Below are positions 11,757 through 39,300 of a stretch of DNA of 64,000 nucleotides, piece after piece (the first letter of the stretch is position 1; each line of letters begins with the position of its first letter). The stretch is from sequence record PV740454.1; one strand, given 5' to 3'. The position numbers and the translations under genes are program-made. The notes under the pieces were generated by a model. That model was not told the DNA's origin and did not search any database. It saw only the letters and a program-made list of their open reading frames with translations.

Positions 11757-11776
11757 CACTAAAATAGGGGAACACG

Positions 11777-27316: not shown

Positions 27317-27654
27317 GAATCATACCTCATAAAAATAGAACCAACACGCTTGTATTGATCAGTGTTCATTAATAGACGTGCCATTTTAGTGTGAGCAACT
27401 GGATTACTTGTCACTAGAATTACAGTCTTCGGATAATTGCCATGATCAATTGCATGAGATAAAATGTGATATCCCTCATGACCTAGTGCATCGCCTAAGT
27501 CATTGTCCATGAATAATGTGATATCAGTTAGATTCGTGTGCTTGATGAATTTCATGCCTTCTTTATATGTGCGAAGAACTAGCTTTTCATCTTCACGAAC
27601 TGTATCTGCGGTTAACTTATTAATGTCACGCAGATCATCGATCAATACATACAT
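27295..27654 (-). CDS. Cyclic-phosphate-processing receiver (REC)-like domain protein
   Basis: LIDDLR...RTY-x-EG...LFMDNDLG...EGY-x-IL...TSNPV; start re-assigned to ATG 27654. Confidence 0.7.
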   Translation of the reverse strand: MYVLIDDLRDINKLTADTVREDEKLVLRTYKEGMKFIKHTNLTDITLFMDNDLGDALGHEGYHILSHAIDHGNYPKTVILVTSNPVAHTKMARLLMNTDQYKRVGSIFMRYDSCQNTSM

Positions 27655-27715
27655 AATATTTCTCTTGCTTATTGAATAAATACTATCATACAGTTCAAAC
27701 AAAGAGAAGTCAACA

Positions 27716-28087
27716 ATGAATGATGAAAAAATCGTATCTTTTGAAGAATACCTAAATGAGGGATGGTTTGAAAGACAATGGTCGCGTTATAAAGCAGGAG
27801 CCGACTCTAGAAGCATCAAGAAGCTCGCTAAGATGCATACAAAGCTTCTGCATATAGAACAGAAGGCAAAGCAAAACAAATACCGCTACGACGTTGTGCG
27901 CTACAATTACGAGCATATTAAAATGAATGTGCTTGACGCAAAGCGACTTATCAACAAACTTCGATACAAGAAAGGAATTAGTCAAGAGCTAGTTCAAGCA
28001 ATGGATAAACTAGATCTTGAATTGGATAGATTGAATGACTTTGCAGTCGAGGGATTGCATATGCTCATGATTAATCACAAGCTATAA
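27716..28087 (+). CDS. Hypothetical protein with capsid-targeting-like N-terminus
   Basis: IVSFEEYLNE; AATAAATA at 27675; own terminator at 28089-28112. Confidence 0.7.
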   Translation: MNDEKIVSFEEYLNEGWFERQWSRYKAGADSRSIKKLAKMHTKLLHIEQKAKQNKYRYDVVRYNYEHIKMNVLDAKRLINKLRYKKGISQELVQAMDKLDLELDRLNDFAVEGLHMLMINHKL

Positions 28088-28088
28088 G

Positions 28089-28112
28089 AAAGCCCCATAT
28101 TGGGGCTTTTTT
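28089..28112 (+). terminator. Intrinsic terminator
   Basis: AAAGCCCCA-TAT-TGGGGCTTTTTT. Confidence 0.85.
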
Positions 28113-28116
28113 GTTT

Positions 28117-28329
28117 TCAGTGTGAGTGGCGTAACTTTTTCTCGATCATACGATCTACAATCGTGGAGTACAGTAAATGTTCTTTGTAATATTTCTCATC
28201 AACTCGGTTGCATTGGAATTGTCGAAAATCTTTGCGCAGACGTGCAATAAATTTATTAAGTGCTTTGCGTACTTTGCAAACTTCAGATAGTTCCATGCTC
28301 TTTAGTGTTTCTTCAGAAAGTATTTCCAT
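28117..28329 (-). CDS. Hypothetical protein
   Basis: 70 aa; GAGGTG RBS. Confidence 0.7.
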   Translation of the reverse strand: MEILSEETLKSMELSEVCKVRKALNKFIARLRKDFRQFQCNRVDEKYYKEHLLYSTIVDRMIEKKLRHSH

Positions 28330-28357
28330 GATTGTTCACCTCTTAGTTAATAGAATA

Positions 28358-28403
28358 CGGGAGACACGGGAATCGAACCCATTGCCTTGACCACATATCT
28401 CCC
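28358..28403 (-). ncRNA. tRNA minihelix-like element (acceptor stem + T arm only)
   Basis: GGGAGAT/GTCTCCC stem; ATGGG-TTCGATT-CCCGT T arm; 14 nt replace the D and anticodon arms. Confidence 0.6.
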
Positions 28404-28425
28404 ACTGAGAAGTTACGCCAATCTG

Positions 28426-28650
28426 TTAATGTGCTAATCTCATCAAACGGCGCATACGTTCTCTTTCTGATAGCTCATCTAGATTTTCTGTTTTCACCTC
28501 TTTGACTTCTTCTGACTGCTCATCGTCTGATGCTTTTTTCTTAGCATCTGGGCCGATGTTGTCCCATAATGAGCTGTTACGCCAGTTTTCGTTATATCCG
28601 TTACCCAACCCGCGACCTTCGCGTGCGTGTGATTTTCTGTATTGACTCAT
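28426..28650 (-). CDS. Hypothetical protein
   Basis: 74 aa charged ORF. Confidence 0.65.
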   Translation of the reverse strand: MSQYRKSHAREGRGLGNGYNENWRNSSLWDNIGPDAKKKASDDEQSEEVKEVKTENLDELSERERMRRLMRLAH

Positions 28651-28847
28651 TCGTCTGAATTCTTTGTTACTTGTTTTACCGCACCAGCTACAGCAACAGC
28701 ACCTGCCACTTTAGCACCCGTTTTAGCTTTTTTAGCTACAGACTTTGCTTTTGATTTCACCTTGTCACGCAGCTTACGTTTTTTGTTATCGACTGGCTTC
28801 TTGTCTTCAATTTCCGACATGAATACGTCGAATGTTTTATCACTCAT
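28647..28847 (-). CDS. Small basic protein with capsid-targeting-like N-terminus
   Basis: MSDKTFDVFMSE; GGAG RBS; ACTAAATA at 28880-28887. Confidence 0.65.
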   Translation of the reverse strand: MSDKTFDVFMSEIEDKKPVDNKKRKLRDKVKSKAKSVAKKAKTGAKVAGAVAVAGAVKQVTKNSDE

Positions 28848-28921
28848 GGCAATTCTCCATCTGTGTTTGAGTATAACTGTATTTAGTATCAAAATAACTT
28901 AAATTGCAAACTCCATAAACA

Positions 28922-28946
28922 AAAAAACCCGCTCAATGGCGGGTTC
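28922..28946 (-). terminator. Terminator ending the tRNA island transcript
   Basis: AACCCGCC-ATT-GAGCGGGTT + T tract. Confidence 0.8.
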
Positions 28947-28961
28947 TAATGTGCAATCAAC

Positions 28962-29235
28962 AGACATTCGAGAAGTGTTTTTTCGTCTTTCCTTAAATCT
29001 CATTTGACTAGCTTGTTTCTTATACAAGCAAGCATTTACGTATTCAGCGCAACGCCCATTCCGTTTAACGATACGAAAATCGTCGAAGTCATTTCCTACT
29101 TCACGAGAACACAGTTCCCTTAGCTGTCAGGCTTACGTCATCACTGAGAATGCAGCTAGTACGCCCCGGTCGTCACCTTGAAGATGACTATTCCAATTTT
29201 AGCTTCTTTGATTAGAATATTGCTGTACAATGTCT
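28962..29235 (-). ncRNA. Long structured RNA 1 (274 nt), Y-RNA-like closing stem + TACAGCAA
   Basis: AGACATT/AATGTCT closing helix; paralog of 33372-33581. Confidence 0.7.
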
Positions 29236-29246
29236 TATTGCGAATT

Positions 29247-29335
29247 TGGCGGAGATACTGGGAGTCGAACCCAGAGAACGCTATTAACGTCCGACACCTT
29301 AGCAGGGTGCTGTCATACCTTTAGACCATATCTCC
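29247..29335 (-). tRNA. trnS: tRNA-Ser(GCT)
   Basis: Cloverleaf, loop CTGCTAA, long variable arm, CCA. Confidence 0.95.
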
Positions 29336-29337
29336 AG

Positions 29338-29517
29338 TTATTTCTCACCGCGTTCTGCTTTGCTAATTTCAACAGCCGCTATTTGTGCGTTTGCTTCTTC
29401 CTCAGTATCATGTGTACCAAGTACGCGACCTTTAGACGAAAGAGCAACCCACTTGTTACCACGCTTCTGCACTTTCTCAGTCAGTTCGTGATATTCATCA
29501 AACGTTTTCAATTTCAT
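29338..29517 (-). CDS. Small protein with capsid-targeting-like N-terminus
   Basis: MKLKTFDEYHELTE; TATAAATA at 29543-29550. Confidence 0.75.
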   Translation of the reverse strand: MKLKTFDEYHELTEKVQKRGNKWVALSSKGRVLGTHDTEEEANAQIAAVEISKAERGEK

Positions 29518-29569
29518 GTCTAATCCCTCAGTTAGTTTATAATATTTATAACTGAGCAACTTTTAATCA

Positions 29570-29750
29570 GTGGCATGCTGCTATCATGCTCAGACATATA
29601 TTTGCTCTTAATGCAGGCGTATGCCACGCGCAGCGCAGATCCCATTTGATAATTTAACGACTTACGGGACTCGTAGCAAGTCTACACATAGCCTTTCAGC
29701 TATATCTTCTTTTAAGACCATAGTGTCGTACGGTCTACTCACCTAAGTGA
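29570..29750 (-). ncRNA. Multi-hairpin structured RNA candidate
   Basis: Hairpins AGACC/GGTCT, TAGC-TGAAAG-GCTA, GACTT/GAGTC, GTGGCAT/ATGCCAC; no ORF. Confidence 0.5.
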
Positions 29751-29753
29751 ATT

Positions 29754-29820
29754 TGGTAGTCACGAGGGAATCAAACCCTCACTCAACGAGTTTTAGAGGC
29801 TCAGAGCAATCATTGTGACC
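29754..29820 (-). tRNA. Degenerate tRNA with CUA (amber-suppressor) anticodon and truncated D arm
   Basis: GGTCAC/GTGACT + ACCA; loop CTCTAAA; T arm GAGGG-TTTGATT-CCCTC; 67 nt. Confidence 0.6.
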
Positions 29821-29821
29821 A

Positions 29822-30163
29822 TTATAATTTGAATCCGATGCTCAACACCCAACGAGATTCATTAGCTTTAGTCGTGCGGTGATAGAACTTATCAGCACGA
29901 AACCCAAACAACCTATCTTTGATGATATGAAATGCACCATTACAGATGAATTCACCGCCAGATTTCGGTTTCTTTACAACCCAATTTATTCTATAATGGA
30001 ATTTACCAGGGTCTTTATGTTTAGGAATATACGAGTCTTTAGGATAATGAAACAAGTAGAAATCAAAGTGTTTGCTGTAAAACAGCGTGAATACTCGATA
30101 TCCAGTTGCCCATTTATCTAAGCCCCATTTAAATCTTCTTAACGTTGGTTTTTGAGTCTACAT
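29822..30163 (-). CDS. 2OG-Fe(II) oxygenase with in-frame TAG at codon 2 (read-through or pseudogene)
   Basis: AAAGG RBS-ATG-TAG-ACT...; same frame continues KWGLDKWATGYRVF...HYPKDSYIPKHKDP...GGEF...FYH...RWVLSIG. Confidence 0.7.
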
Positions 30164-30179
30164 ACAAATTACCTTTAAT

Positions 30180-30256
30180 TGGTGCCCAACCCGAGATTCG
30201 AACTCGGATCATCTAGTGTTTGAAACTAGCGCCTCTGCCAATTGGACTAGTTGGGC
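30180..30256 (-). tRNA. trnL: tRNA-Leu(CAA), short variable loop
   Basis: Loop TTCAAAC, 5-nt variable loop, ACCA. Confidence 0.9.
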
Positions 30257-30262
30257 GAAATA

Positions 30263-30339
30263 TGGTACGCATGGGCGGATTCGAACCGCCATCCCTGAGA
30301 ATTTAAACCTCATGCCTCTGCCAATTGGACCACATGCGC
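30263..30339 (-). tRNA. trnL: tRNA-Leu(TAA), short variable loop
   Basis: Loop TTTAAAT, 5-nt variable loop, ACCA. Confidence 0.9.
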
Positions 30340-30345
30340 GTTATT

Positions 30346-30536
30346 GTGTCGTTATGTCGATGTTCACGACACTGCTAGGCTGCCGAGTTATCAACTCATT
30401 ATACTAGCCAAGGGCTTCTTACACACTAATCACTACTCGCAAGTAGCAACTCAAACATGCTCAGTTCCGAGCGATTAACCTCTTAGACCGTAGTCTCGAA
30501 CCATAACCGACCCCTATGCACATCCAACTTGTGCAT
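30346..30536 (-). ncRNA. Multi-hairpin structured RNA candidate
   Basis: At least six hairpins (ATGCAC/GTGCAT, AGAC/GTCT, GCTC/GAGC, GCTACT/AGTAGT, GAGTT/AACTC, GTGTCGT/ACGACAC). Confidence 0.55.
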
Positions 30537-30541
30537 CGTCT

Positions 30542-30763
30542 TTAATACTGATCTTGCAACCCGCACTTCGTGCATGTCGCAGTAATTATTTCCATACAAC
30601 CATCAGCTATCATTTCATGTTCACAATCGACTTGCTTGTTATATTGATGCAAGTTTATACGTTCTTGATGAAGCTCAACTTGAAGCTTTCGAATTCGTTG
30701 CTTAGAATAAGCGACATTCGCTTCAGCTTGTCGAGTAAGTATTTCTTTAACTTCCGGTTTCAT
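30542..30763 (-). CDS. Hypothetical coiled-coil protein with C-terminal Cys cluster
   Basis: Start re-assigned to MKPEV (the track start overlaps tRNA-Cys). Confidence 0.65.
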   Translation of the reverse strand: MKPEVKEILTRQAEANVAYSKQRIRKLQVELHQERINLHQYNKQVDCEHEMIADGCMEIITATCTKCGLQDQY

Positions 30764-30780
30764 GATATAGTTCTCAAATT

Positions 30781-30854
30781 TGGAGCTCGAACAGGGAGTC
30801 GAACCCTGACCTGCGGATTTGCAATCCGTCATACTGCCATTATACGATTCGAGC
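30781..30854 (-). tRNA. trnC: tRNA-Cys(GCA)
   Basis: Loop TTGCAAA, TCCA end. Confidence 0.93.
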
Positions 30855-30859
30855 GTTGT

Positions 30860-31162
30860 TTAGTATGTTGCAAAACGAATTTTAATGTTTTGCTCATCTA
30901 CTGGCAATACTGCAAACAGATAAAAATGCGCAAAGTCAGGCATTTCATTTTTATGTCGTTTTATCTGCTCATTTTCTATTGCTCGTTCAATCAACCAATA
31001 GAAGTCAATTCGATGCATATCATCAGTAAATGGTATAATCAATGAGCGAGATTCAACGTGCGCTGCGTTTAATGAACTACCATGTATAACTTCACCAGTT
31101 CTGCTATCAACCGCATTACACGGACAACAGATTAAGTGGATTTTCTTGCCATGAATATACAT
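30860..31162 (-). CDS. Hypothetical protein
   Basis: 100 aa ORF between tRNAs. Confidence 0.6.
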   Translation of the reverse strand: MYIHGKKIHLICCPCNAVDSRTGEVIHGSSLNAAHVESRSLIIPFTDDMHRIDFYWLIERAIENEQIKRHKNEMPDFAHFYLFAVLPVDEQNIKIRFATY

Positions 31163-31169
31163 AATTTAC

Positions 31170-31310
31170 CTACGGAAAATAAACTAGTGCTTCGTGATTA
31201 ACTAGACCTTCGATTTCTTCTTCAGTCAGTTCTTCAAGTCGCTTGATTACTTCATCTGGTAAAACACCATCGGGAACTTTAACAGATATCGTCATTAACA
31301 CTTCAGTCAT
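31170..31310 (-). CDS. Small hypothetical protein
   Basis: Start re-assigned to MTEVL (the track start overlaps tRNA-His). Confidence 0.5.
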   Translation of the reverse strand: MTEVLMTISVKVPDGVLPDEVIKRLEELTEEEIEGLVNHEALVYFP

Positions 31311-31336
31311 AATATATTTCTCATTCAAATGTACTT

Positions 31337-31411
31337 TGGGGTGACCGACGGGAATCGAACCCGCGAGTTCCTGAATCACAATCAGGGGCATTACCACTCT
31401 GCCACAGCCAC
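31337..31411 (-). tRNA. trnH: tRNA-His(GTG)
   Basis: Loop TTGTGAT, C73, CCA; genomic -1 base is T. Confidence 0.93.
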
Positions 31412-31486
31412 ACCAAAGTACACTTAATGAACTTTGGGATACATTTACGTGGATCATTCGAGCGTAGCACTACTACGCTAGTAAGT

Positions 31487-31798
31487 TTATTTGATTTTCG
31501 ATAGCATTTTATGCATATCTTTCGTGTTGTTTAGAAAGTCAACATAATGAGCAAAATCAACGTCTCTGTCGTATTGACGAACTAGAGAACTAGTCTTTGC
31601 TAGCCACTCATCGGTGATGATATCATTCAACCCGAAGTTTTTCTTCAGAGCCATTAAGCGTCGCTCGTAATCATCACCGTCGATGTTCATTGGGTCAGGA
31701 GCGATATAGTCAGAAAGAATCTCAGCATTTTTGTCGATACGTTTCATATCGAACTTTTCATCAAGTTGAGATTCAGTGTATTCTTTAAATGATTGCAT
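31487..31798 (-). CDS. Protein with capsid-targeting-like N-terminus
   Basis: MQSFKEYTESQLDE; ACTAAATA at 31824-31831. Confidence 0.75.
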   Translation of the reverse strand: MQSFKEYTESQLDEKFDMKRIDKNAEILSDYIAPDPMNIDGDDYERRLMALKKNFGLNDIITDEWLAKTSSLVRQYDRDVDFAHYVDFLNNTKDMHKMLSKIK

Positions 31799-31822
31799 AG
31801 TCTTATCTCTTGTATTAAAAAC

Positions 31823-32065
31823 TTATTTAGTGTTCTTGAGATAGATACTATCACTCGAAAGCTCTCTTGTAAACATATTTTTGAAATAAATTTCAATATC
31901 GTCTGAAGTAGTAGAAGATTCAATGCTCAATGCAAGTTCTAGAATCTTACCACGTTTATAACCTGCACGCCAACAGTCAAACATAAGTCTGTCCATTTGT
32001 TTCAGTTTTTCAACTTGATTTGGGTGTACGTATTCGTGAGATTCTAGCAAAGCTGGTGTGTTCAT
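31823..32065 (-). CDS. Hypothetical protein
   Basis: 80 aa ORF. Confidence 0.65.
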   Translation of the reverse strand: MNTPALLESHEYVHPNQVEKLKQMDRLMFDCWRAGYKRGKILELALSIESSTTSDDIEIYFKNMFTRELSSDSIYLKNTK

Positions 32066-32087
32066 AATATAGTTCTCATCATAAGAA

Positions 32088-32161
32088 TGGTAGCCCCTGT
32101 CGGATTCGAGCCGACTCTACTTCTGTGTAAGAGAAGCGTACTCCCATTATACTAAGGGGCT
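32088..32161 (-). tRNA. trnV: tRNA-Val(TAC)
   Basis: Loop CTTACAC, AGCCCCT/AGGGGCT, ACCA. Confidence 0.92.
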
Positions 32162-32162
32162 A

Positions 32163-32306
32163 TTAGACTGGGTAATTGTATTTCCATTGATCTGGGTCTG
32201 GTCTACCACAACGAATACACGATGTGCCTAACCAATTTCTCTGACCACAAACACAAGTGTAACCTTGTTGTTCGAAGTTTTCACCACCGATACTAAGAAT
32301 TTTCAT
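32163..32306 (-). CDS. Small zinc-ribbon-like protein
   Basis: MKILSIGG...CVCG-x7-CIRCG. Confidence 0.55.
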   Translation of the reverse strand: MKILSIGGENFEQQGYTCVCGQRNWLGTSCIRCGRPDPDQWKYNYPV

Positions 32307-32321
32307 ACAATCACCAAAAAT

Positions 32322-32395
32322 TGGAGCGGGTACACGGACTCGAACCGACTCTACTTCTGTGTAAGAGAAGCGTACTCCCATTATACTAAGGGACT
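32322..32395 (-). pseudogene. Chimeric tRNA: Val 5' portion fused to Gly 3' end; acceptor stem unpaired
   Basis: 5' part near-identical to 32088-32161; 3' GTGTACCCGCTCCA identical to tRNA-Gly 32763-32837. Confidence 0.85.
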
Positions 32396-32402
32396 ATTAA
32401 CC

Positions 32403-32747
32403 TTATTTGACTTGAACTACAAACGAATTAGGTATAGCTGTTATTACAGGTAATATAAATTCAATCGTTCGTTGAGATAATGCATGAGTCGAAATCAACC
32501 CATTGATCGCCATCGATCTCATTCTACCCAAGTCTTCGTTCAGAACAAAACGAAATCGAACGCGAATATCTTGAATATCAAGATCATTTTTATTACCACT
32601 GATACGATACACCGACTTTAACTTCAAGTATTCAGTAATTAAATCACGCTCAGCTTTGTTACGAACACAAATTATATATGTTCGTTCATTACTCATGTGA
32701 ATCAACATCGCATTTAGAGCATCGATTATATTAGAAGTTTCGTTCAT
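32403..32747 (-). CDS. Hypothetical protein
   Basis: 114 aa ORF. Confidence 0.65.
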   Translation of the reverse strand: MNETSNIIDALNAMLIHMSNERTYIICVRNKAERDLITEYLKLKSVYRISGNKNDLDIQDIRVRFRFVLNEDLGRMRSMAINGLISTHALSQRTIEFILPVITAIPNSFVVQVK

Positions 32748-32762
32748 AGTATTGCCAGAATA

Positions 32763-32837
32763 TGGAGCGGGTACACGGACTCGAACCGAGACGAACGACT
32801 TGGAAGGACATCATGCTACCAATTACATCATACCCGC
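32763..32837 (-). tRNA. trnG: tRNA-Gly(TCC)
   Basis: Loop CTTCCAA, TCCA end. Confidence 0.9.
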
Positions 32838-32842
32838 ATTGT

Positions 32843-33049
32843 TTAATCTGAAGCGTCGAACAAATCACGTATTGCACGTAGATTCGTAAGCTCTACTGTA
32901 AGTGTTCTAATAAAGAACGGGTTAGTCTCTTTAGCGAGACGATTTTCAACATAACGAATTTTATCGCGTATGTTGCCCTTGCTTAGTGTAAAGTAGTCAT
33001 GCTTCTTAACCTTTTTGAATGAATTTAAGCTTGTGTTTAAGCTTGCCAC
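32843..33049 (-). CDS. Hypothetical protein
   Basis: 68 aa basic ORF. Confidence 0.5.
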   Translation of the reverse strand: MASLNTSLNSFKKVKKHDYFTLSKGNIRDKIRYVENRLAKETNPFFIRTLTVELTNLRAIRDLFDASD

Positions 33050-33155
33050 GAGATTTATGTCGCTTACACAGTTTTGTACCGTGATAGCTATGATATTGAT
33101 AAAAGCTAGTTAGCTTCTTATACAACGATTTCATGCATACCCTCATGATTGAAAT

Positions 33156-33231
33156 TGGTGGAGACACCGATACTCGAAATCGGATCTAACGCCGTATGAA
33201 AGCGCCGCTCTACCACTTGAGCTACATCTCC
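33156..33231 (-). tRNA. trnM: tRNA-CAT, probably elongator Met
   Basis: Loop TTCATAC, ACCA. Confidence 0.85.
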
Positions 33232-33244
33232 GTATCTTGGTTTT

Positions 33245-33360
33245 GTATGTTTTACATGACGATAACCAGAAACGTGCATAATAATGCCACGTGATACATC
33301 CTATATCACGGCTAACTGAGTTAGCATATCGTGCCTTGCGGCTGTAGTGTCGTTTCCGAC
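33245..33360 (-). ncRNA. Multi-hairpin structured RNA candidate
   Basis: GTCG-GAAA-CGAC, GCC-GCAA-GGC, GCTAAC/GTTAGC, GTGATA/TATCAC hairpins. Confidence 0.5.
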
Positions 33361-33371
33361 GAATTAAGTAC

Positions 33372-33581
33372 AGACAATACCGAAGTGTTTTTTCGTCTTT
33401 GACATGAATCGGAGTTGACTATCTTATTGGTTCTCAACAAGCAAATATCGTCTGTTTCAGCGACGCGCCTATCTGACTATTTCTAGACAGAGAGAATCTT
33501 TCCTTTCAAGCTGCACCGAAGCACTGCCCAGGTTAAGATCATCACCTTTTTAAGTAAGTAATTTGTTGCTGTATATTGTCT
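33372..33581 (-). ncRNA. Long structured RNA 2 (210 nt), Y-RNA-like closing stem + TACAGCAA
   Basis: AGACAATA/TATTGTCT closing helix; 19-nt identity with RNA 1. Confidence 0.7.
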
Positions 33582-33646
33582 AACTATCTGCACTCGTACG
33601 AATCTCGAAAGGTATCGTAGTTGTCGTGCAGAAGTTCTTAAATCTT

Positions 33647-33883
33647 TTACTCGTCCATCAATCCGTCGTAGAAATCATCCAATGCTGAATGCACACGACG
33701 TAAACGATCAACGTTCCCACGACCGTAGTTCATGTCAGTTTCACGCGCCCAATCCATCATTGCACTAGATTGCATGATTGAATAAGCCTTGTGAAAGAAG
33801 TCTTCAAACTGTTCTGACGATTCAAACTCACGTGGTAATGTTCTTGCTTCGTTTAATTTCTTAAACTCGTTATATGTTTTCAT
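33647..33883 (-). CDS. Internal-head-protein-like small protein
   Basis: MKTYNEFKKLNE; TATAAATA at 33905-33912. Confidence 0.8.
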   Translation of the reverse strand: MKTYNEFKKLNEARTLPREFESSEQFEDFFHKAYSIMQSSAMMDWARETDMNYGRGNVDRLRRVHSALDDFYDGLMDE

Positions 33884-33920
33884 GAGATTCTCCTATTAAA
33901 AACATATTTATACAAGAACT

Positions 33921-33996
33921 TGGCATCCCCACTAGGATTCGAACCTAGAACCACATCCTTAGAAGGGACGTGCTCTTCCAATTGAGCTATGAGGAC
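33921..33996 (-). tRNA. trnR: tRNA-Arg(TCT)
   Basis: Loop CTTCTAA, GCCA. Confidence 0.95.
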
Positions 33997-34070
33997 ATTA
34001 AAAAGATTCGATCCATAAGCTCGTGCAGATGATGGTAGTAAAGAGAATCCGCGCTCATGTGATCGAAATT

Positions 34071-34145
34071 TGGTGGACCGTAAGGGATTCGAACCCTTGA
34101 CTCTGCCTTGCAAGGGCAGTGTATTCCCAATTATACTAACAGCCC
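34071..34145 (-). tRNA. trnA: tRNA-Ala(TGC)
   Basis: Loop CTTGCAA, G3:U70. Confidence 0.95.
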
Positions 34146-34154
34146 ATATTTTAT

Positions 34155-34364
34155 TTACAACTGCGTGATTGAGATATGATCCCAGCCATATAGACCATCA
34201 AGCTCTTCAATCGGCTCACACACAATGTCAGAAATATACTCAGCAACTTTTGCTTCAATTTCTTCATCAGATAGTTTTTCATCAACGGAAAAAGCATCTT
34301 CGTTATTGTTGCCACCGAAATAACCGCCAATGTCATATTCACACCATATTGAAATATATTTCAT
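34155..34364 (-). CDS. Acidic hypothetical protein
   Basis: Start re-assigned to MKYISIW. Confidence 0.6.
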   Translation of the reverse strand: MKYISIWCEYDIGGYFGGNNNEDAFSVDEKLSDEEIEAKVAEYISDIVCEPIEELDGLYGWDHISITQL

Positions 34365-34389
34365 GTTATTCTCACAGTTGTTTTGAAAA

Positions 34390-34465
34390 TGGTGCCCTGA
34401 CACGGATTTGAACCGCGAACCTGCTCATTACAAGTGAGCTGCACTGCCAGTTGTGCTATCAGGGC
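34390..34465 (-). tRNA. trnT: tRNA-Thr(TGT)
   Basis: Loop CTTGTAA, ACCA. Confidence 0.95.
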
Positions 34466-34468
34466 GAT

Positions 34469-34585
34469 ACTGAGTGTCATTACTTGCGCCATCCGAGACT
34501 AGAGATACCAACTCTAAACGGGATTCGAACCCGAAACATTTCTTTTATCGGAAGAATTTGTAATTGTTTGCTGAAAACACTCAAT
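34469..34585 (-). ncRNA. Y-RNA-like tRNA mimic (117 nt)
   Basis: 10-bp closing helix ATTGAGTGTT/GACACTCAGT; TTCAGCAA; anticodon-like hairpin TTCTT-CCGATAA-AAGAA; T arm CGGG-TTCGAAT-CCCG; no D arm or CCA. Confidence 0.75.
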
Positions 34586-34591
34586 GGTATT

Positions 34592-34665
34592 TGGCTGGGA
34601 TATAGAGATTCGAACTCTAACTGACGGAATCAAAATCCGTAGTGCTACCATTACACCATATCCCA
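34592..34665 (-). tRNA. trnQ: tRNA-Gln(TTG)
   Basis: Loop TTTTGAT, GCCA. Confidence 0.95.
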
Positions 34666-34672
34666 ATTGTTC

Positions 34673-34921
34673 TTATCGCTGAAAATAGCCGTGACTCATT
34701 TTGATCTTATCGGCAAATTCGCGAAGCATACGGTCTGCAAGTTCAAACGATAACTCTTTATCAGCGTCACCTTGTTGCTGCAAATCGTGTGCAATTTTAC
34801 TTCGAAGCTCTTCTGGCTTGTACCCGAACACTTGTTTACCCCAGTGTTCTTTAACTCTATGGTACGATTCCATCGAAATGCTATCTCGTCTAGCTTCTTG
34901 AAATTCTGAAAATGTTTTCAT
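34673..34921 (-). CDS. Internal-head-protein-like small protein
   Basis: MKTFSEFQE; TATAAATA at 34945-34952. Confidence 0.75.
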   Translation of the reverse strand: MKTFSEFQEARRDSISMESYHRVKEHWGKQVFGYKPEELRSKIAHDLQQQGDADKELSFELADRMLREFADKIKMSHGYFQR

Positions 34922-34961
34922 GATTATTACCTTTCGTAAAATCATATTTATAAATTATCTT

Positions 34962-35037
34962 TGGCGGAACCGACGGGGCTCGAACCCGCTTCCTTTCCCG
35001 TGACAGGGGAATATGCACCCAGTTACACCTCGGCTCC
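34962..35037 (-). tRNA. trnD: tRNA-Asp(GTC)
   Basis: Loop CTGTCAC, GCCA. Confidence 0.95.
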
Positions 35038-35256
35038 CCAAAGACAACTTACGTTGCTTTGTGCTCGTGCAAACCAAACACTAGCTAAACGACTTCTTGA
35101 TTTCTTAGTTGTACTATACATTCCCTGCTAAGGGCATCATCGTTCTTGTTTTTAACAAATGTCATGAAAGTGAGATCTTGTTATGCAAGAGGTTTCAAAT
35201 CCCTGCATACAAGCAGACATAACAACCAATGCTCTCATACATTGTCATGGTCAAAC

Positions 35257-35332
35257 TGGCGCTCCATGTTGGACTCGAACCAACGACTCTCTGATTAACA
35301 GTCAGACACTCTACCGACTGAGTTAATGAAGC
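35257..35332 (-). tRNA. trnN: tRNA-Asn(GTT)
   Basis: Loop CTGTTAA, GCCA. Confidence 0.95.
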
Positions 35333-35338
35333 ATAATA

Positions 35339-35413
35339 TGGCGACGAAGGAGAATTTCGAAATCTCGACCTGTCGGTTAACAGCCGACTGCTCTGCCTCT
35401 GAGCTACTCCGTC
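35339..35413 (-). tRNA. trnN: tRNA-Asn(GTT), second divergent copy
   Basis: Loop CTGTTAA, GCCA. Confidence 0.9.
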
Positions 35414-35425
35414 ATTAAATTAAAC

Positions 35426-35484
35426 AGTAATCATTCTTTGCTTTTTCAAAATAAAAGTTTAGTATTGTTTGCTGCAAGATTACT
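35426..35484 (-). ncRNA. Minimal Y-RNA-like element (59 nt)
   Basis: AGTAATC/GATTACT closing helix, TGCAGCAA, hairpin CTTTT/AAAAG, AAAGAAT before the 3' strand. Confidence 0.65.
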
Positions 35485-35489
35485 TAAAC

Positions 35490-35563
35490 TGGCAGGGACA
35501 TAGAGATTCGAACTCTAACGAACGGGTTTGGAATCCGTCATGCTGCCGTTACATCATGTCCCT
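35490..35563 (-). tRNA. trnW: tRNA-Trp(CCA)
   Basis: Loop TTCCAAA, GCCA. Confidence 0.93.
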
Positions 35564-35569
35564 AAAATT

Positions 35570-35643
35570 TGGTAGCCCCAGACAGACTCGAACTGTCAAC
35601 GTGCGATTATCGGTCGCGTGTTTTACCGTTAAACTATGGAGCT
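35570..35643 (-). tRNA. trnI: tRNA-Ile(GAT)
   Basis: Loop CCGATAA (C33), ACCA. Confidence 0.92.
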
Positions 35644-35705
35644 AAAGTGAGCACCGAAGTGCTCTTGTTAATCGGTTAAGTGACTAAACTCCCCGGTTAA
35701 CAAAT

Positions 35706-35802
35706 TGGCGGAAGACTAGGGATTCGAACCCTAACAAGCATTTCTGCTCCGACGGTTTTCAAGACCGTTGCCGCTACCCCGAATCTTTCGGCTAAGCCTT
35801 CC
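35706..35802 (-). tRNA. trnS: tRNA-Ser(TGA) with enlarged D loop
   Basis: Loop CTTGAAA, long variable arm, about 17-nt D loop. Confidence 0.88.
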
Positions 35803-35808
35803 TTAATT

Positions 35809-35885
35809 TGGATGCGTGAGGTTGGATTCGAACCAACGACCTTCGGCTTATGAGACCGATGAGCTGACCACTGCTCTACTCCGCA
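35809..35885 (-). tRNA. trnfM: Initiator-like tRNA-Met(CAT), atypical
   Basis: fMet-like D arm (GAGCAGTGGTCAGCTC) and CTCATAA loop; bulged acceptor, U73. Confidence 0.8.
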
Positions 35886-35895
35886 TTTATTCAAC

Positions 35896-35981
35896 AGCTT
35901 GCGTTCTTTGGTCTGTTTATCTCTGTCTGAACTAAGTTCGTCTAGTGATCAATAGATTAAGTAATTTGCAGTATGCAAGCT
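35896..35981 (-). ncRNA. Y-RNA-like element (86 nt)
   Basis: AGCTTGC/GCAAGCT closing helix, TACTGCAA, AAAGAAC before the 3' strand. Confidence 0.65.
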
Positions 35982-35986
35982 AAATC

Positions 35987-36073
35987 TGGTGGTTCGCCTA
36001 GGACTCGAACCTAGAAGCCCGATTAAGGGCGAGGGATTTACAATCCCCTGACTTACCATTAGTCTAACGAACC
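35987..36073 (-). tRNA. trnY: tRNA-Tyr(GTA)
   Basis: Loop TTGTAAA, long variable arm. Confidence 0.95.
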
Positions 36074-36079
36074 AGAATT

Positions 36080-36154
36080 TGGTTCACCCGACGAGATTCG
36101 AACTCGCGCATACTTCCTTGAAAGGGAAGTGACCTACCGTTAGTCTACGGGTGA
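36080..36154 (-). tRNA. trnE: tRNA-Glu(TTC)
   Basis: Loop CTTTCAA, ACCA. Confidence 0.92.
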
Positions 36155-36218
36155 ATTATATTGTATATTGATTTGCAAGCTAATCAACTTGCAAAGCGAT
36201 ACACAATGTATCTGAATT

Positions 36219-36292
36219 TGGTGGGTCCACAGAGATTCGAACTCTGACTGAAGGATTAAAAGTCCCATATGCTACCATTACATCATAGACCC
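36219..36292 (-). tRNA. trnK: tRNA-Lys(TTT)
   Basis: Loop CTTTTAA, ACCA. Confidence 0.93.
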
Positions 36293-36380
36293 AATTTGAT
36301 TTTCACGTTAAGAGCGTTTGCAAAATAACCCAAAACTAAAATCTCTTGCTTGATTTAACTCTTACAAACAAGCTATAATT

Positions 36381-36456
36381 TGGTGCACCCTACGGCTATC
36401 GAGACCGTGACCTGCGGGACTTCAATCCGCCGCTCTACCAACTGAGCTAAGGGTGC
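36381..36456 (-). tRNA. trnF: tRNA-Phe(GAA)
   Basis: Loop TTGAAGT, ACCA; T loop CTCGATA. Confidence 0.9.
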
Positions 36457-36508
36457 AATGTGCGAAGATTTATGTTTTAAGTCAGCTATCGCAAACAGAC
36501 TACATGTT

Positions 36509-36586
36509 TGGTACGCATGAAGAGATTCGAACTCTTAACTTCTGGTTTCTAAGACCAGTGCCTCTGCCAGATTGGGCTACATGCGC
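36509..36586 (-). tRNA. trnL: tRNA-Leu(TAG), short variable loop
   Basis: Loop CTTAGAA, 5-nt variable loop. Confidence 0.9.
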
Positions 36587-36611
36587 ATTAAATTGTAAAC
36601 TTCTTTTCTTC

Positions 36612-36660
36612 ATTATACATGATGTTTTTATCTTTGTAAACATCTTTTTTAATTTATTTT
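36612..36660 (-). promoter_or_regulatory. Strong sigma70/T4-early-type promoter driving the tRNA array
   Basis: GTTTACA-N17-TATAAT with TG and an A-rich UP element. Confidence 0.8.
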
Positions 36661-36791
36661 GAAGAACTTCGTTTTCTATGTGTTAATATTAACACTCACT
36701 CAAGACATCTTAAACACTAATTTGTGAAAAAGTTCGTTAAATTCTATCGTCTCGACAGTACTTAACGAGATACGGTCCTAAGCGTATCAAA

Positions 36792-36867
36792 TGGCACCCA
36801 ATACAAGATTCGAACTCGTAACCTTCGCCTTCGTAGGGCGCTGCTCTTCCAATTGAGCTAATCGGGC
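36792..36867 (-). tRNA. trnR: tRNA-Arg(ACG)
   Basis: Loop CTACGAA, GCCA. Confidence 0.95.
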
Positions 36868-36874
36868 ATTAAAT

Positions 36875-36951
36875 TGGTCCGCGACAAGCGATTCGAACGC
36901 TTAACTTCTCCGCCCCAAACGGAGTACTCTACCAGATTGAGCTAGTCGCGG
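36875..36951 (-). tRNA. trnP: tRNA-Pro(TGG)
   Basis: Loop TTTGGGG, ACCA. Confidence 0.95.
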
Positions 36952-37265
36952 TTTGTTCTTTAACTTTGTTTATGATACTCTGTAATCAAAATACGATAAA
37001 CAAAATTTTCAAATTATTTTCATTTTCTTCAGATAATAAAAAAGGACGCTATTTGCGTCCTCAAGTATACTTCTATGTTATACTATCGGACTACAAGAGG
37101 GAATCCCAGTTTTGTTTCGCACACGGATTCGCAAGATACACGAATTCTGAGCGCAGAAAATCGCTGCGTAAAATCTCAGTTGAATGTGTAATCGAATGTG
37201 TCATTGAATGCTCTCTTGCAAAAATTAAAATTGTTTTTCTTCTTTATTTTATTTATATTCGTGTT

Positions 37266-37493
37266 TCAATCGTATAGACAAATTTTACCATGTTTTTCAA
37301 AATATTTTAAAATTTCTTCATATTCAACGTCAGAAAGTGTGCGAAATTCACGAAATCCGTCACCAGTAGAAGCGTCGTAAGGAAGTCTTGTGTATTTTTT
37401 ATGCAAGTACGATTCATGCATACGAGCATCATTAACAGTTATAGACAATAAATTGTGTATATCAGTCCCACGTTTTCTCGCACATTCATACAC
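37266..37493 (-). CDS. Hypothetical protein
   Basis: 75 aa ORF. Confidence 0.55.
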   Translation of the reverse strand: MYECARKRGTDIHNLLSITVNDARMHESYLHKKYTRLPYDASTGDGFREFRTLSDVEYEEILKYFEKHGKICLYD

Positions 37494-37526
37494 TCTCTGT
37501 TTGACACGATAACTATTGCAAATTAA

Positions 37527-37760
37527 TTAACCTAGATGCTTACGCTTATTCATTTCAACTAGAATTTCATCGTTGTAATGCTTGTTAAGCTGTACAAACT
37601 TCTTGTGTTGATCTTCTGTCAACTCATTCGTGTCATTTAGGTGCTTCAAGAACCCAAGAGGCTTACGAAACGACTTACGATACTCGTTTAGACGTTCATC
37701 TGTTAGATTATGCAACTGTTTCGGAGTAAGCAGTACTTTATTAATATCAAAATTACTCAT
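37527..37760 (-). CDS. Hypothetical protein
   Basis: 77 aa; GAGG RBS. Confidence 0.7.
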   Translation of the reverse strand: MSNFDINKVLLTPKQLHNLTDERLNEYRKSFRKPLGFLKHLNDTNELTEDQHKKFVQLNKHYNDEILVEMNKRKHLG

Positions 37761-37785
37761 GTGTAACCTCTCTTTGTTTGTAAAA

Positions 37786-37901
37786 TGGTAGTCGGGGCTG
37801 GATTCGAACCAGCGACCACGTGCTTAACAGGCAATTGAAAGAGTGCTGGAGCGATACTTGACAGTATCATTCTTCGTGCTCTACCACTGAGCTACCCGAC
37901 T
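37786..37901 (-). ncRNA. tRNA-like RNA with about 40-nt insertion in the anticodon arm
   Basis: Normal acceptor, D and T arms + ACCA; insert AAGAAT-[GATACT-GTCA-AGTATC]-GC-TCCAGCAC...TGC-CTGTTAA-GCA. Confidence 0.8.
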
Positions 37902-37906
37902 GTAAA

Positions 37907-38200
37907 TTATTTAATGTTAAAGTCACCGCGTTCAAACGCTGCTAAAAATTCAGCAGTCGAATCAAATGCAATGTATTCTTTACCAGTATGTTCTTTTGTT
38001 CTTACTCTAACCTTACCACCACGAACTGCTACTTCGAACTGCCCAGATTTAACATGAGCGTCTTTTCGAATCGAACCTGACATCATTTTCTCAAGCTTTT
38101 TCGCAAAGTTTACGTCGTTGACAGTCGTAGGGTTCTGTGGCATCAGAGTATCCCAACGAGAATCGCGCATTTCGGTAACAAACTCATCAAAAGTTTTCAT
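37907..38200 (-). CDS. Internal-head-protein-like small protein
   Basis: MKTFDEFVTE; CATAAATA at 38223-38230. Confidence 0.8.
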   Translation of the reverse strand: MKTFDEFVTEMRDSRWDTLMPQNPTTVNDVNFAKKLEKMMSGSIRKDAHVKSGQFEVAVRGGKVRVRTKEHTGKEYIAFDSTAEFLAAFERGDFNIK

Positions 38201-38225
38201 TGTACTCTCCTTTTAAAGAAAGTAT

Positions 38226-38753
38226 TTATGTTCGAAGTTTGAACTTCAGATTTCGCCATTCAAAGTTACGTTTGTTCTTTTCTTTGTAGAACGAATCCCA
38301 GTCAATTGAAATAGGACAATTCTTACTTCCAACACGTGCAATGAACACATCGTGAGTCTTGCTGTATCGCGTTCTAAGCTCGTTTACGCGCTTATCGTAG
38401 TTAGCGATATAATCAGAGCAAGCTTTGTTGTACGCTGCTTTAGAGAAGCGTTCGTTGCTTGCAAACACGTGACCTAGATATGGGCGAATTACACGAACAC
38501 GTTCTCGCGACCATCCCATATCGAAACTGTTCTCGATCTCACCGGTAATCCTTCCCGTCTTTTTACAACGAGCTAGAATAACCCAACAACGCTCACGTCG
38601 AAAATCTTTTCGCGTGTACACGTTAACATGTTCTTCAACATATTCAGCGTGTTTGTTGTTGTAAATCGCTCGAAGACGCTTTCTCTCTTCAGGATCCATT
38701 GCAGCACGTTCTTCTTTAGAGAACGCTTGAGCAAATGTCATTGGCACATTCAT
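38226..38753 (-). CDS. Basic hypothetical protein
   Basis: 175 aa ORF. Confidence 0.7.
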   Translation of the reverse strand: MNVPMTFAQAFSKEERAAMDPEERKRLRAIYNNKHAEYVEEHVNVYTRKDFRRERCWVILARCKKTGRITGEIENSFDMGWSRERVRVIRPYLGHVFASNERFSKAAYNKACSDYIANYDKRVNELRTRYSKTHDVFIARVGSKNCPISIDWDSFYKEKNKRNFEWRNLKFKLRT

Positions 38754-38959
38754 AACATACCTCGCTTACGCTTCAACTGACTTCGCTCAATCTGAGTAGT
38801 AATTTGCTTGTCTTTAGCTTTACTGCGACGAGAGTTACCCCATCGAAACCCAGCACACAGCCCATGTTGATCACGCTTTAACTTTTTTGCAAGCCAATGC
38901 GGAATTTCTTCACCTTTGCGCTGATAGTGTTTAGCAGTATCAGTGTAAGTTTTACCCAT
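38750..38959 (-). CDS. Small basic hypothetical protein
   Basis: 69 aa; GGAG RBS. Confidence 0.65.
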   Translation of the reverse strand: MGKTYTDTAKHYQRKGEEIPHWLAKKLKRDQHGLCAGFRWGNSRRSKAKDKQITTQIERSQLKRKRGML

Positions 38960-38970
38960 AATATTCTCCG

Positions 38971-39208: not shown

Positions 39209-39219
39209 ATAATAAATTG

Positions 39220-39297: not shown

Positions 39298-39300
39298 ATA

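Follow-up and report, generated by a model that had tools for sequence, protein, structure and literature searches.

The internal proteins of phage T4 have an N-terminal leader, in which positions 4 and 7 serve targeting and positions 8 and 10 serve processing (PMC9026906), and Ip1-3 act against GmrSD enzymes (PMC12373910). In phiKZ-like giant phages, propeptide-cleaved ejection proteins are processed behind a Glu residue by a protease related to gp21 (PMC9026906), and P1 has Dar proteins that protect against restriction (PMC12810830). Head-packaged proteins that are delivered into the cell are a known type of phage weapon, one not yet annotated in the phage group considered here. The window we analysed, a stretch of 64,000 nucleotides from record PV740454.1, belongs to Vibrio phage CZ01, a T4 relative of the KVP40/nt-1 type. 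We judge, at a probability of roughly 0.7, that seven small ORFs in this window encode T4 Ip-type internal head proteins.

These ORFs had been singled out, with their N-termini, in a first-pass annotation made from the sequence, and reading the frames found all seven in place, in and around an island of tRNA genes:

27716-28087, plus strand: candidate 1, 123 aa; leader core displaced by 5 residues; predicted mature part 108 aa, pI 9.9; phrog_14513
28647-28847, minus strand: candidate 2, 66 aa; leader core after a 2-residue extension; predicted mature part 54 aa, pI 10.3; phrog_24717
29338-29517, minus strand: candidate 3, 59 aa; predicted mature part 45 aa; phrog_3684
31487-31798, minus strand: candidate 4, 103 aa; predicted mature part 89 aa, pI 5.6
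33647-33883, minus strand: candidate 5, 78 aa; predicted mature part 66 aa, pI 4.7
34673-34921, minus strand: candidate 6, 82 aa; predicted mature part 73 aa
37907-38200, minus strand: candidate 7, 97 aa; predicted mature part 87 aa, pI 9.6; phrog_27387
29247..36951, minus strand: tRNA island, 25 tRNA genes
39220-39297: additional single tRNA gene outside the island

Candidates 3-6 sit in spacers of the tRNA island. The stop codon of candidate 3 lies 2 nt ahead of tRNA-Ser, candidate 6 fills the tRNA-Asp/tRNA-Gln spacer, and the promoter motif of candidate 5 (see below) comes immediately past tRNA-Arg. Three starts (28847, 29517 and 34921) are ATGs that are likely on biological grounds and internal to a longer mechanical ORF; GenBank starts the first two at the ATG chosen here (CZ01_183, 184) and annotates the third as a longer ORF beginning 24 nt upstream (CZ01_200). 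That some of the seven are chance reading frames among tRNA genes, and not genes, deserves consideration here, since the CZ01 GenBank entry has many short ORFs called over tRNA genes and its annotation of this region is therefore unreliable. Every candidate, however, combines a leader with a promoter and a ribosome-binding site, all seven are conserved at least in nt-1, and two of the families have peptide evidence, all of which makes chance frames scarcely credible.

Three candidates begin almost exactly as the T4 proteins do. The seven leading residues of candidates 5, 6 and 7 (starts 33883, 34921 and 38200) share six with T4 ipI/ipII/ipIII (T4 taken from NC_000866.4): candidate 5 agrees with ipII/ipIII, candidate 6 with ipI, and the ten-residue leader of candidate 7 has exactly the T4 layout. 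The seven-residue pattern of the three T4 ip genes was observed three times in the 128,000 six-frame residues of the window against 0.0009 expected, and all three matches are candidate start codons; none of 200 shuffles produced any match. Candidates 1-4 have the same leader core at an offset of 0-5 residues. Counting from Met1, aromatic residues occupy positions 4 and 7 in candidates 4-7; an identically spaced pair follows a 2-residue extension in candidates 2 and 3 and one of 5 residues in candidate 1.

We counted residues by column in 22 aligned leaders from T4, the window and relatives. T4 position 2 is Lys in 19, position 3 is Thr or Ser in 18, position 6 is Glu in 17, position 7 is Phe or Tyr in all 22, and position 10 is Glu in 14; position 4 is Phe, Tyr or Leu in 22/22 by construction, because this column served for the alignment. 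The conserved columns coincide with the positions defined by T4 genetics (PMC9026906). In divergent orthologues the leader is more conserved than the remainder (for candidate 7, 7/10 residues versus 27%), and the earlier statement that the seven sequences are unrelated beyond the leader holds at the sequence level, with all-against-all BLASTP aligning only the first ~14 residues. At their N-termini, candidates also weakly resemble the beginnings of PHROG families labelled 'internal head/virion protein'. The N-terminus of candidate 7 weakly matches phrog_2667, 'internal head protein', and that of candidate 3 shows weak similarity to the start of phrog_14713, to which the virion protein VP6E351A_0188 of the related phage 6E35.1a belongs.

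A late promoter had also been proposed before each ORF. A late-promoter motif does precede all seven, 21-33 nt upstream, whereas the exact TATAAATA is found at only three:

27675..27682, plus strand: late-promoter-like AATAAATA, 33 nt before the ATG of candidate 1
28880..28887, minus strand: late-promoter-like ACTAAATA, 32 nt before the ATG of candidate 2
29543..29550, minus strand: exact TATAAATA, 25 nt before the ATG of candidate 3
31824..31831, minus strand: late-promoter-like ACTAAATA, 25 nt before the ATG of candidate 4
33905..33912, minus strand: exact TATAAATA, 21 nt before the ATG of candidate 5
34945..34952, minus strand: exact TATAAATA, 23 nt before the ATG of candidate 6
38223..38230, minus strand: late-promoter-like CATAAATA, 22 nt before the ATG of candidate 7

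The motif of candidate 4 reads AATAAATA in nt-1, and for candidate 1 each of the seven upstream regions read from orthologues keeps an ATAAATA core at equal distance. Late promoters of KVP40 are documented to vary in their first base, as is the form CTAAATA for phage Aeh1 (PMC1524935). Late promoter and leader are strictly coupled in the island: the motif is absent before all 14 other plausible ORFs there, as against its presence at 7/7 leader ORFs, and across nine syntenic islands the leader is found on 30 of 31 promoter-preceded ORFs. The window holds one further gene of this kind, outside the set of seven:

11777..12883, plus strand: eighth leader-bearing late gene, 368 aa; CATAAATA at 11749-11756; phrog_11974

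The shared N-terminus could instead be a signal for strong late translation through A/U-rich early codons, unrelated to packaging. The leader codons are A/T-rich and lie immediately 3' of strong ribosome-binding sites, and all the genes concerned are predicted late genes. Yet the promoter also precedes other late genes in the window that lack the leader, namely tail fibres and the ORFs at 16670, 54338 and 61371; conservation is at the amino-acid level and falls at exactly the T4-defined positions; and leader-bearing proteins are enriched in a relative's virion proteome (see below). We consider a purely translational role very improbable.

CZ01 encodes gp20, gp67, gp68, gp21 (Peptidase_S77), gp22 and gp23, with gp20, a prohead protein, gp68, gp21, gp22 and gp23 at 140.8-146.2 kb of its record. 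The protease of 6E35.1a shares 50% identity with T4 gp21. A hydrophobic-x-Glu motif, which is short and common by itself, ends at residues 9-15 in all seven candidates, with the Glu of candidate 6 one residue closer to the N-terminus than its T4 counterpart. In 6E35.1a, a site of the same kind occurs in the major capsid protein and in Alt. Taking the first hydrophobic-x-Glu past the aromatic pair as the cleavage site gives 76 residues for T4 IPI*, equal to the published value (PMC3012670), and predicts mature proteins of 4.9-13 kDa for the candidates.

Published mass spectrometry of 6E35.1a virions, in two replicates (PMC12028318), bears on packaging. The 6E35.1a ORFs that show a clear leader at the annotated start number seven, and all seven were detected, among them the orthologues of candidates 2 and 6, compared with about 94 of 444 genes overall (21%; hypergeometric about 1.6e-5). 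The wider leader rule was shaped post hoc, with the data already seen, and under its loose version three further ORFs match, none of which was detected. Mean counts in virion preparations were 14.5 for VP6E351A_0380 (candidate 2 orthologue, same PHROG), 12.5 for VP6E351A_0391 (candidate 6 homologue, 51% identity) and 11 for VP6E351A_0357 (orthologue of the eighth leader gene). Candidate 1 is the weakest member of the set, given its five-residue leader displacement and an orthologue, VP6E351A_0377, seen in one of the two replicates (3 and 0 spectral counts). Orthologues of candidates 3, 4, 5 and 7 were not found in 6E35.1a, the one proteome used. The particles were PEG-precipitated, not gradient-purified, and replication enzymes are listed at similar counts, so detection alone cannot place a protein inside the head.

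Gene order is also shared with T4. The T4 order is denV-ipII-ipIII-e-...-tRNAs-...-ipI-57B-57A-1-3, and in the vibriophages 57B-like, 57A, 1 and 3 come after the island; the candidate region is syntenic with the T4 ip-tRNA region, where both ip loci flank the tRNA cluster. Near-identity of the leaders to those of ipI/II/III, the assembly machinery, this synteny and the relative's virion proteome together strongly support the first-pass proposal that these predicted late genes carry T4-type capsid-targeting leaders, for head packaging and gp21-type cleavage. The address tag is shared with proteins that T4 loads into its head, and the seven are therefore very probably head-packaged proteins. We hold it highly likely that candidates 2-7 are leader-targeted head proteins; candidate 1 is probably one too, with less assurance. 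Packaging and cleavage of the candidates are well supported, and the cuts would fall at the sites predicted from sequence.

The seven differ in distribution. Among the nine islands, candidates 1 and 2 occur in nine each and are core genes, candidate 3 in seven, candidates 4 and 5 in two each, and candidates 6 and 7 in three each, so that only candidates 4-7 show the patchiness expected of arms-race genes. Candidates 4 and 5 were found only in CZ01 and nt-1, both V. natriegens phages, and candidate 7 in CZ01, nt-1 and, at 31% identity, ValKK3-type phages. Beyond the leader, the mature parts have no match to internal proteins in Pfam, NCBIfam, PHROG or PDB sequences, and no resemblance in sequence or fold to T4 IPI*, IPII, IPIII or known anti-defence proteins; a structure search with the candidate 7 model (pLDDT 68) found only its own orthologues.

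Leader-targeted head proteins need not counter host defences. They could be scaffold-like core parts that are cleaved and lost, or small basic proteins that neutralise and organise the DNA in the head. The presence of candidates 1 and 2 in 9/9 islands fits this explanation, as does composition: candidate 2 (5.7 kDa) is Lys/Ala-rich with a pI of 10.3, and candidates 1, 3 and 7 are basic, like T4 internal proteins (PMC9026906). The scaffold proteins gp22, gp67 and gp68 are, moreover, cut by the same protease. Candidates 4 and 5, however, are acidic and confined to the two V. natriegens phages, and candidates 6 and 7 evolve fast and have a patchy distribution, which suits accessory arms-race genes and would be surprising if the need were structural. 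The orthologues of candidates 2 and 6 persist in finished particles and so are not lost as scaffold fragments are, and all three T4 Ips are restriction inhibitors (PMC12373910). For the set as a whole, we regard the absence of any counter-defence role as unlikely.

The core candidates (1, 2 and perhaps 3) are more likely to have a role with the packaged DNA itself, in neutralising its charge, condensing it or ejecting it; candidates 1 and 2 look more structural, and candidate 2 looks more like a DNA-associated internal protein. For the strain-specific candidates 4, 5, 6 and 7 the most likely function would be counter-defence before phage gene expression, in the manner of T4 Ip1-3 against GmrSD enzymes, and we advance only tentatively that the accessory candidates are defence inhibitors. 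The first-pass suggestion that each of the seven is injected and inhibits a different early-acting defence draws on analogy with T4 Ip1-3 (PMC12373910) and is unlikely to hold for all seven.

As internal head proteins, the candidates would each be transcribed late from their own short late promoter and made as precursors whose first 9-15 residues would form the capsid-targeting sequence. The leader would bind the gp22-based scaffolding core of the prohead, and a gp21-type prohead protease would cut after the Glu of hydrophobic-x-Glu, leaving a mature protein of 4.9-13 kDa that would be kept in the head and exit with the DNA at infection. By analogy with T4 (PMC12373910), they may be delivered into the cell with the DNA. 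A further and rather doubtful extension is that the tRNA spacers are slots for self-contained cassettes swapped among Schizotequatrovirus/Mylasvirus phages, with the accessory ones countering defences against incoming 7-deazaguanine-modified DNA. The unit gained, lost and swapped would comprise a late promoter, ribosome site, targeting leader and variable domain, and the conserved tRNA genes and resident homing endonucleases would be the recombination anchors. If so, candidates 4-7 would counter Vibrio defences, a target class that differs from the GmrSD enzymes of the T4 proteins.

Set beside known systems, the candidates resemble the ejection proteins of phiKZ-like giant phages (phiKZ, 201phi2-1, SPN3US) and P1 Dar in being probably head-packaged and in their presumed entry into the cell with the DNA; those proteins differ in having other targeting signals, a much larger size and no link to a tRNA region. 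The comparison extends to T4 IPI/IPII/IPIII and the hypervariable T-even ip loci. The N-terminal leader (six of seven leading residues in three candidates) and the hydrophobic-x-Glu cleavage layout are alike, the proteins are small with mutually unrelated mature parts, the content of the loci varies between close relatives, and the genes adjoin a tRNA cluster upstream of 57B-57A-1-3. Unlike their T4 counterparts, the vibriophage genes are interspersed singly among tRNA genes, and each has a late promoter of its own; several leaders have a 2-5 residue N-terminal extension; of the mature parts, three of seven are acidic or close to neutral; and the mature domains are unrelated to the T4 proteins in sequence and fold. 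The DNA of the CZ01 phage group contains 7-deazaguanine, not glucosyl-hmC, so T4 targets are not simply transferable and GmrSD-type targets are not implied. T4 Alt, a packaged ADP-ribosyltransferase that gp21 cleaves, is a large conserved enzyme of known activity, whereas the candidates are ORFans of 59-123 aa. The 6E35.1a Alt homologue nonetheless has the same leader layout, with an aromatic residue at 4 and Leu-x-Glu at 7-9, and is abundant in virions, which indicates that the leader system also serves larger enzymes, as in T4 (PMC9026906).

Over 27000-39500 the window has 100% identity to Vibrio phage CZ01 (PV740454.1; subtracting 62000 from a record position gives the window position), whose host is Vibrio natriegens; identity to phage nt-1 is 96.7%, and to KVP40-type phages about 86% in the conserved parts. 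CZ01, nt-1 and the KVP40 type are large T4-related myoviruses (Straboviridae), and the genes of this region are all labelled 'hypothetical protein' in the CZ01, nt-1 and KVP40 records. ARAGORN placed 26 tRNA genes in the window, every one on the minus strand and between 29247 and 39297. PV740454.1 annotates no tRNA genes across 29247-36951; a dozen short 'hypothetical proteins' in that record (CZ01_188, 194, 195 and 198-206) overlap ARAGORN tRNA genes and are almost certainly annotation artefacts. In and around this tRNA island the first-pass annotation had reported at least seven small late genes that begin with a T4-type capsid-targeting leader. That observation is confirmed: all seven ORFs with the quoted N-termini are present where it had placed them, with a purine-rich ribosome site a few bases 5' of every ATG.

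Likely coding ranges of the seven leader-bearing ORFs (c1 to c7)
c1: 27716-28087, plus strand
c2: 28647-28847, minus strand
c3: 29338-29517, minus strand
c4: 31487-31798, minus strand
c5: 33647-33883, minus strand
c6: 34673-34921, minus strand
c7: 37907-38200, minus strand

The N-termini of the T4 internal head proteins were read directly from genes ipI, ipII and ipIII in the 60-80 kb interval of NC_000866.4 (accession from PMC9697503). Six of the first seven residues of c5, c6 and c7 are the same as in these genes. The seven-residue pattern common to ipI, ipII and ipIII matched 3 times in 128,000 six-frame residues of the window (0.0009 expected; no match in 200 of 200 shuffles), and the three matches coincide precisely with the c5, c6 and c7 starts. 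A slightly relaxed six-residue core matched four times, always at a candidate N-terminus. The spacing from Met1 in c4 is that of the T4 leaders, and the same spacing is kept after a two-residue extension in c2 and c3 and a five-residue extension in c1.

We aligned 22 leaders (three from T4, eight from the window, eleven from relatives) on the first aromatic residue. In T4, genetics assigned targeting to positions 4 and 7 of the leader and processing to 8 and 10 (PMC9026906).

Residues at T4 leader positions among the 22 aligned leaders
Position 2: Lys, 19/22
Position 3: Thr or Ser, 18/22
Position 4: Phe, Tyr or Leu, 22/22 (by construction, as the alignment column)
Position 6: Glu, 17/22
Position 7: Phe or Tyr, 22/22
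Position 10: Glu, 14/22

Beyond the leader the seven proteins part company, as the first-pass annotation had proposed: in an all-against-all BLASTP comparison their similarity is confined to the first ~14 residues, and the remainders are mutually unrelated (seven-sequence database; best E 0.06). Between divergent orthologues the leader is better kept than the remainder (7/10 vs 27% for c7, 10/12 vs 48-52% for c2). An ORF at 20493 (plus strand) with a c1-like start was considered as an extra leader gene and dropped, having neither promoter nor family.

A hydrophobic-x-Glu tripeptide, the kind of site after which a gp21-type prohead protease is predicted to cut, ends at residue 9-15 in 7/7 candidates. 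Taking the first such tripeptide after the aromatic pair yields a mature T4 IPI of 76 residues, which equals the published length (PMC3012670). Under the same rule the T4 internal proteins come to 76, 90 and 183 residues, against 45-108 residues (4.9-13 kDa) for the predicted mature c1-c7; four of these (c1, c2, c3 and c7) are basic and two (c4 and c5) acidic, with c6 close to neutral. CZ01 encodes the corresponding head machinery, namely portal gp20, a gp67-like prohead protein, gp68, gp21 protease (Peptidase_S77), scaffold gp22 and capsid gp23, its gp20-gp23 head genes lying at 140.8-146.2 kb of the record, about 15 kb past the window. In 6E35.1a, a related Schizotequatrovirus, the protease shares 50% identity with T4 gp21 along its whole length, and the major capsid protein, scaffold proteins and Alt (the packaged ADP-ribosyltransferase of T4) carry a hydrophobic-x-Glu-type site near the N-terminus.

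The first-pass annotation had also placed a late promoter before each ORF. A late-promoter-like motif does precede all seven, its end 21-33 nt from the ATG; the exact form, TATAAATA, stands directly 5' of c3, c5 and c6 only, accounting for three of its six occurrences in the window (3.1 expected). The other four have variants in which one or two bases of the motif's 5' end differ: CATAAATA for c7, AATAAATA for c1, and ACTAAATA for c2 and c4. Such variants have support in the literature: KVP40 late promoters show little conservation of the first T, and the form used by phage Aeh1 is CTAAATA (PMC1524935). Within the island the motif precedes 7/7 leader ORFs vs 0/14 other plausible CZ01-annotated ORFs (Fisher's exact test, 1 in 116,280).

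A promoter-first search that ignored the protein, taking ORFs of 40 or more codons preceded by the motif at 10-50 nt, was applied to nine syntenic islands (this window, nt-1, KVP40, phi-pp2, QD01, VS2, phi-Grn1, 6E35.1a and F86), and 30 of the 31 motif-preceded ORFs carried the leader. Elsewhere in the same window the motif precedes late genes without a leader, among them the ORFs at 16670, 54338 and 61371 and the tail fibre genes at 19954 and 23596; the leader is thus no general feature of late genes. Scans for sigma-70 promoters and terminators gave signals no higher than the shuffled expectation. A further exact TATAAATA lies at 37250-37257 (minus strand) with no leader ORF downstream; on that strand it is followed only by a 37-codon ORF (37091-37204) and, at 37042-37062, a strong hairpin resembling a terminator, and 37042-37257 may be a small late transcript.

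Evidence from virions comes from a 2025 Schizotequatrovirus study reporting tandem mass spectrometry of 6E35.1a particles (PMC12028318, Tables S4 and S8), whose detected proteins we mapped on genome MW824377.1. Three small proteins of the 6E35.1a tRNA island were detected, and all three bear the leader: VP6E351A_0380 (mean 14.5 counts), which has a PHROG in common with c2; VP6E351A_0391 (mean 12.5 counts), 51% identical to c6; and VP6E351A_0394 (mean 8 counts), whose family is absent from CZ01. Four larger leader proteins encoded outside the island were also detected (VP6E351A_0188, 0174, 0154 and 0103; 14 to 55 counts), and the orthologue of c1 was faint (3 and 0 counts); these counts come from particles that were PEG-precipitated, not gradient-purified, with replication enzymes listed at similar counts. 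Proteins with a clear leader at the annotated start were detected in 7/7 cases vs about 94/444 genes overall (hypergeometric, about 1.6e-5). The tables give counts without peptide positions, so that cleavage is a prediction.

A wider leader rule, tuned on the data, had three loose matches that went undetected by mass spectrometry. Leader-like starts were also found on Alt (MYOV011v1_p0113) and several other 'hypothetical' virion proteins of 6E35.1a. The virion-detected 'hypothetical' proteins with this layout outside the island are MYOV011v1_p0027, p0039, p0057, p0106, p0024, p0181, p0184 and p0114; in p0027 the leader is followed by long Gly/Ala-zipper segments. Leader-targeted cargo in these phages thus extends well past the island, to about a dozen proteins or more. 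In our window, a 368-aa ORF in 11749-12883 (plus strand; phrog_11974) begins in a leader-like way (Lys 2, Leu 4, Phe 7, hydrophobic 8, Glu 10) and is preceded by CATAAATA at 20 nt; its orthologue VP6E351A_0357 was detected in 6E35.1a virions (mean 11 counts), and it is a probable eighth packaged protein, outside the island. Just downstream of the 6E35.1a island, a 57B-like gene (segment 27092-27547) is annotated 'RNA ligase' and has been called anti-CBASS Acb1 (PMC12028318); its product, VP6E351A_0408, was detected in virions (5 and 9 counts) and seems to have no leader.

The families differ in distribution. Both c1 (36-100% identity) and c2 occur in 9/9 islands and c3 in 7/9; c6 is found in CZ01, nt-1 and V. 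crassostreae phages, c7 in CZ01, nt-1 and ValKK3-type phages (31% identity), and c4 and c5 in CZ01 and nt-1 only, among 50,697 phage records. Leader families beyond these seven occur in other islands: phi-Grn1 has two, and 6E35.1a and F86 have one in common. The nt-1 copy of c2 (about 2450-2650 of the nt-1 segment) differs from CZ01 by one frameshifting indel and is annotated as two short ORFs; a 454 homopolymer or sequencing error is possible in this A-rich gene of a 454-sequenced genome.

Family and sequence searches, with a fold search for c7, returned no named relatives for the mature parts of c1-c7, and nothing rose above noise in Pfam, NCBIfam and PDB sequence searches. The nt-1 orthologue was the only match to c7 among 5.8 billion proteins, and c4 had no relative beyond itself among 1.84 billion representative proteins; a weak repeated match of c4 in the solute-binding domains of a 2101-residue protein was judged spurious. 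In the c7 model (pLDDT 68, moderate) the leader forms a helix, followed by a long helix, a sheet of four strands and a helix at the C-terminus, with no significant neighbour in PDB and BFVD except its own orthologues; the c4 model (pLDDT 57) was unreliable and too poor for a fold search. The mature part of c3 (29338-29517, minus strand) matches the AP2 DNA-binding domain (Pfam PF00847) below threshold (E 0.17) and, solidly (E 4e-17), the middle of the 262-position phrog_3684, a PHROG without assigned function; c3 may be a mini DNA-binding domain. A weak match links c1 to a 'transcriptional regulator' PHROG.

The packaging part of the original interpretation is well supported. Its functional part, one inhibitor per host defence, is a reasonable analogy that probably does not apply to all seven candidates. 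T4 Ip1, Ip2 and Ip3 have only the leader in common, and the GmrSD-type restriction enzyme inhibited differs from one to the next (PMC12373910). The vibriophages replace guanine with 7-deazaguanine derivatives, not cytosine with glucosyl-hmC (PMC12028318), and the targets therefore likely differ from those of the T4 proteins. By analogy with T4, the patchy, fast-evolving c4-c7 would be the best counter-defence candidates; a DNA-associated role fits the core members c1 and c2 better, c1 being basic and c2 Lys/Ala-rich.

T-even phages are already known to carry elements of this kind. For the vibriophages, neither the annotations nor the nt-1 and 2025 papers appear to describe them, how many there are or how they are arranged, though older KVP40 literature could mention them: the 2025 virion-proteome paper does not mention internal proteins for these phages (PMC12028318), and the nt-1 genome paper discusses them for the T4/PST pair and treats nt-1/KVP40 differences as ORFans (PMC4122927). 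Recent work showed T4 Ip1-3 all to be injected proteins that inhibit distinct restriction enzymes, which makes 'leader-bearing small late gene' a practical search key for counter-defence genes, and the key works in distant, ecologically important, broad-host-range marine vibriophages. It yielded seven genes in the tRNA island, a probable eighth elsewhere in the window and more in a relative's genome, all annotated 'hypothetical'. These are concrete candidate packaged effectors for phages of Vibrio natriegens work and aquaculture, and they raise the question of what Ip-type proteins target in phages without glucosyl-hmC DNA.

The genomic setting also matches T4. There (NC_000866.4) the order is denV, ipII, ipIII, e, nudE, e.2-e.8, rnaC, rnaD, eight tRNA genes with segB, trna.2-4, ipI, 57B, 57A, 1, 3, 2 and 4, all on one strand, with the tRNA cluster flanked by both ip loci. 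After the vibriophage island come a 57B-like gene, 57A (tail fibre chaperone), gene 1 (dNMP kinase) and gene 3, as in T4, and the island is therefore the vibriophage version of the same ip-tRNA hyperplastic region. HNH-type endonuclease genes lie within the tRNA islands of nt-1 (segment 7443-7886), phi-pp2 (8281-8730) and F86 (19107-19493), and none within that of CZ01; they recall segB of the T4 tRNA cluster, and such endonucleases might drive exchange of neighbouring cassettes. The fit of the leader genes among the tRNAs is close: the c6 promoter starts 10 nt past tRNA-Asp and the c6 stop codon is 8 nt short of tRNA-Gln, in a spacer that is only about 20 nt in KVP40; c3 stops 2 nt before tRNA-Ser, and the c5 promoter immediately follows tRNA-Arg. 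Relative to T4, the vibriophage tRNA cluster has expanded to 26 genes, with the ip-type genes fitted into its spacers.
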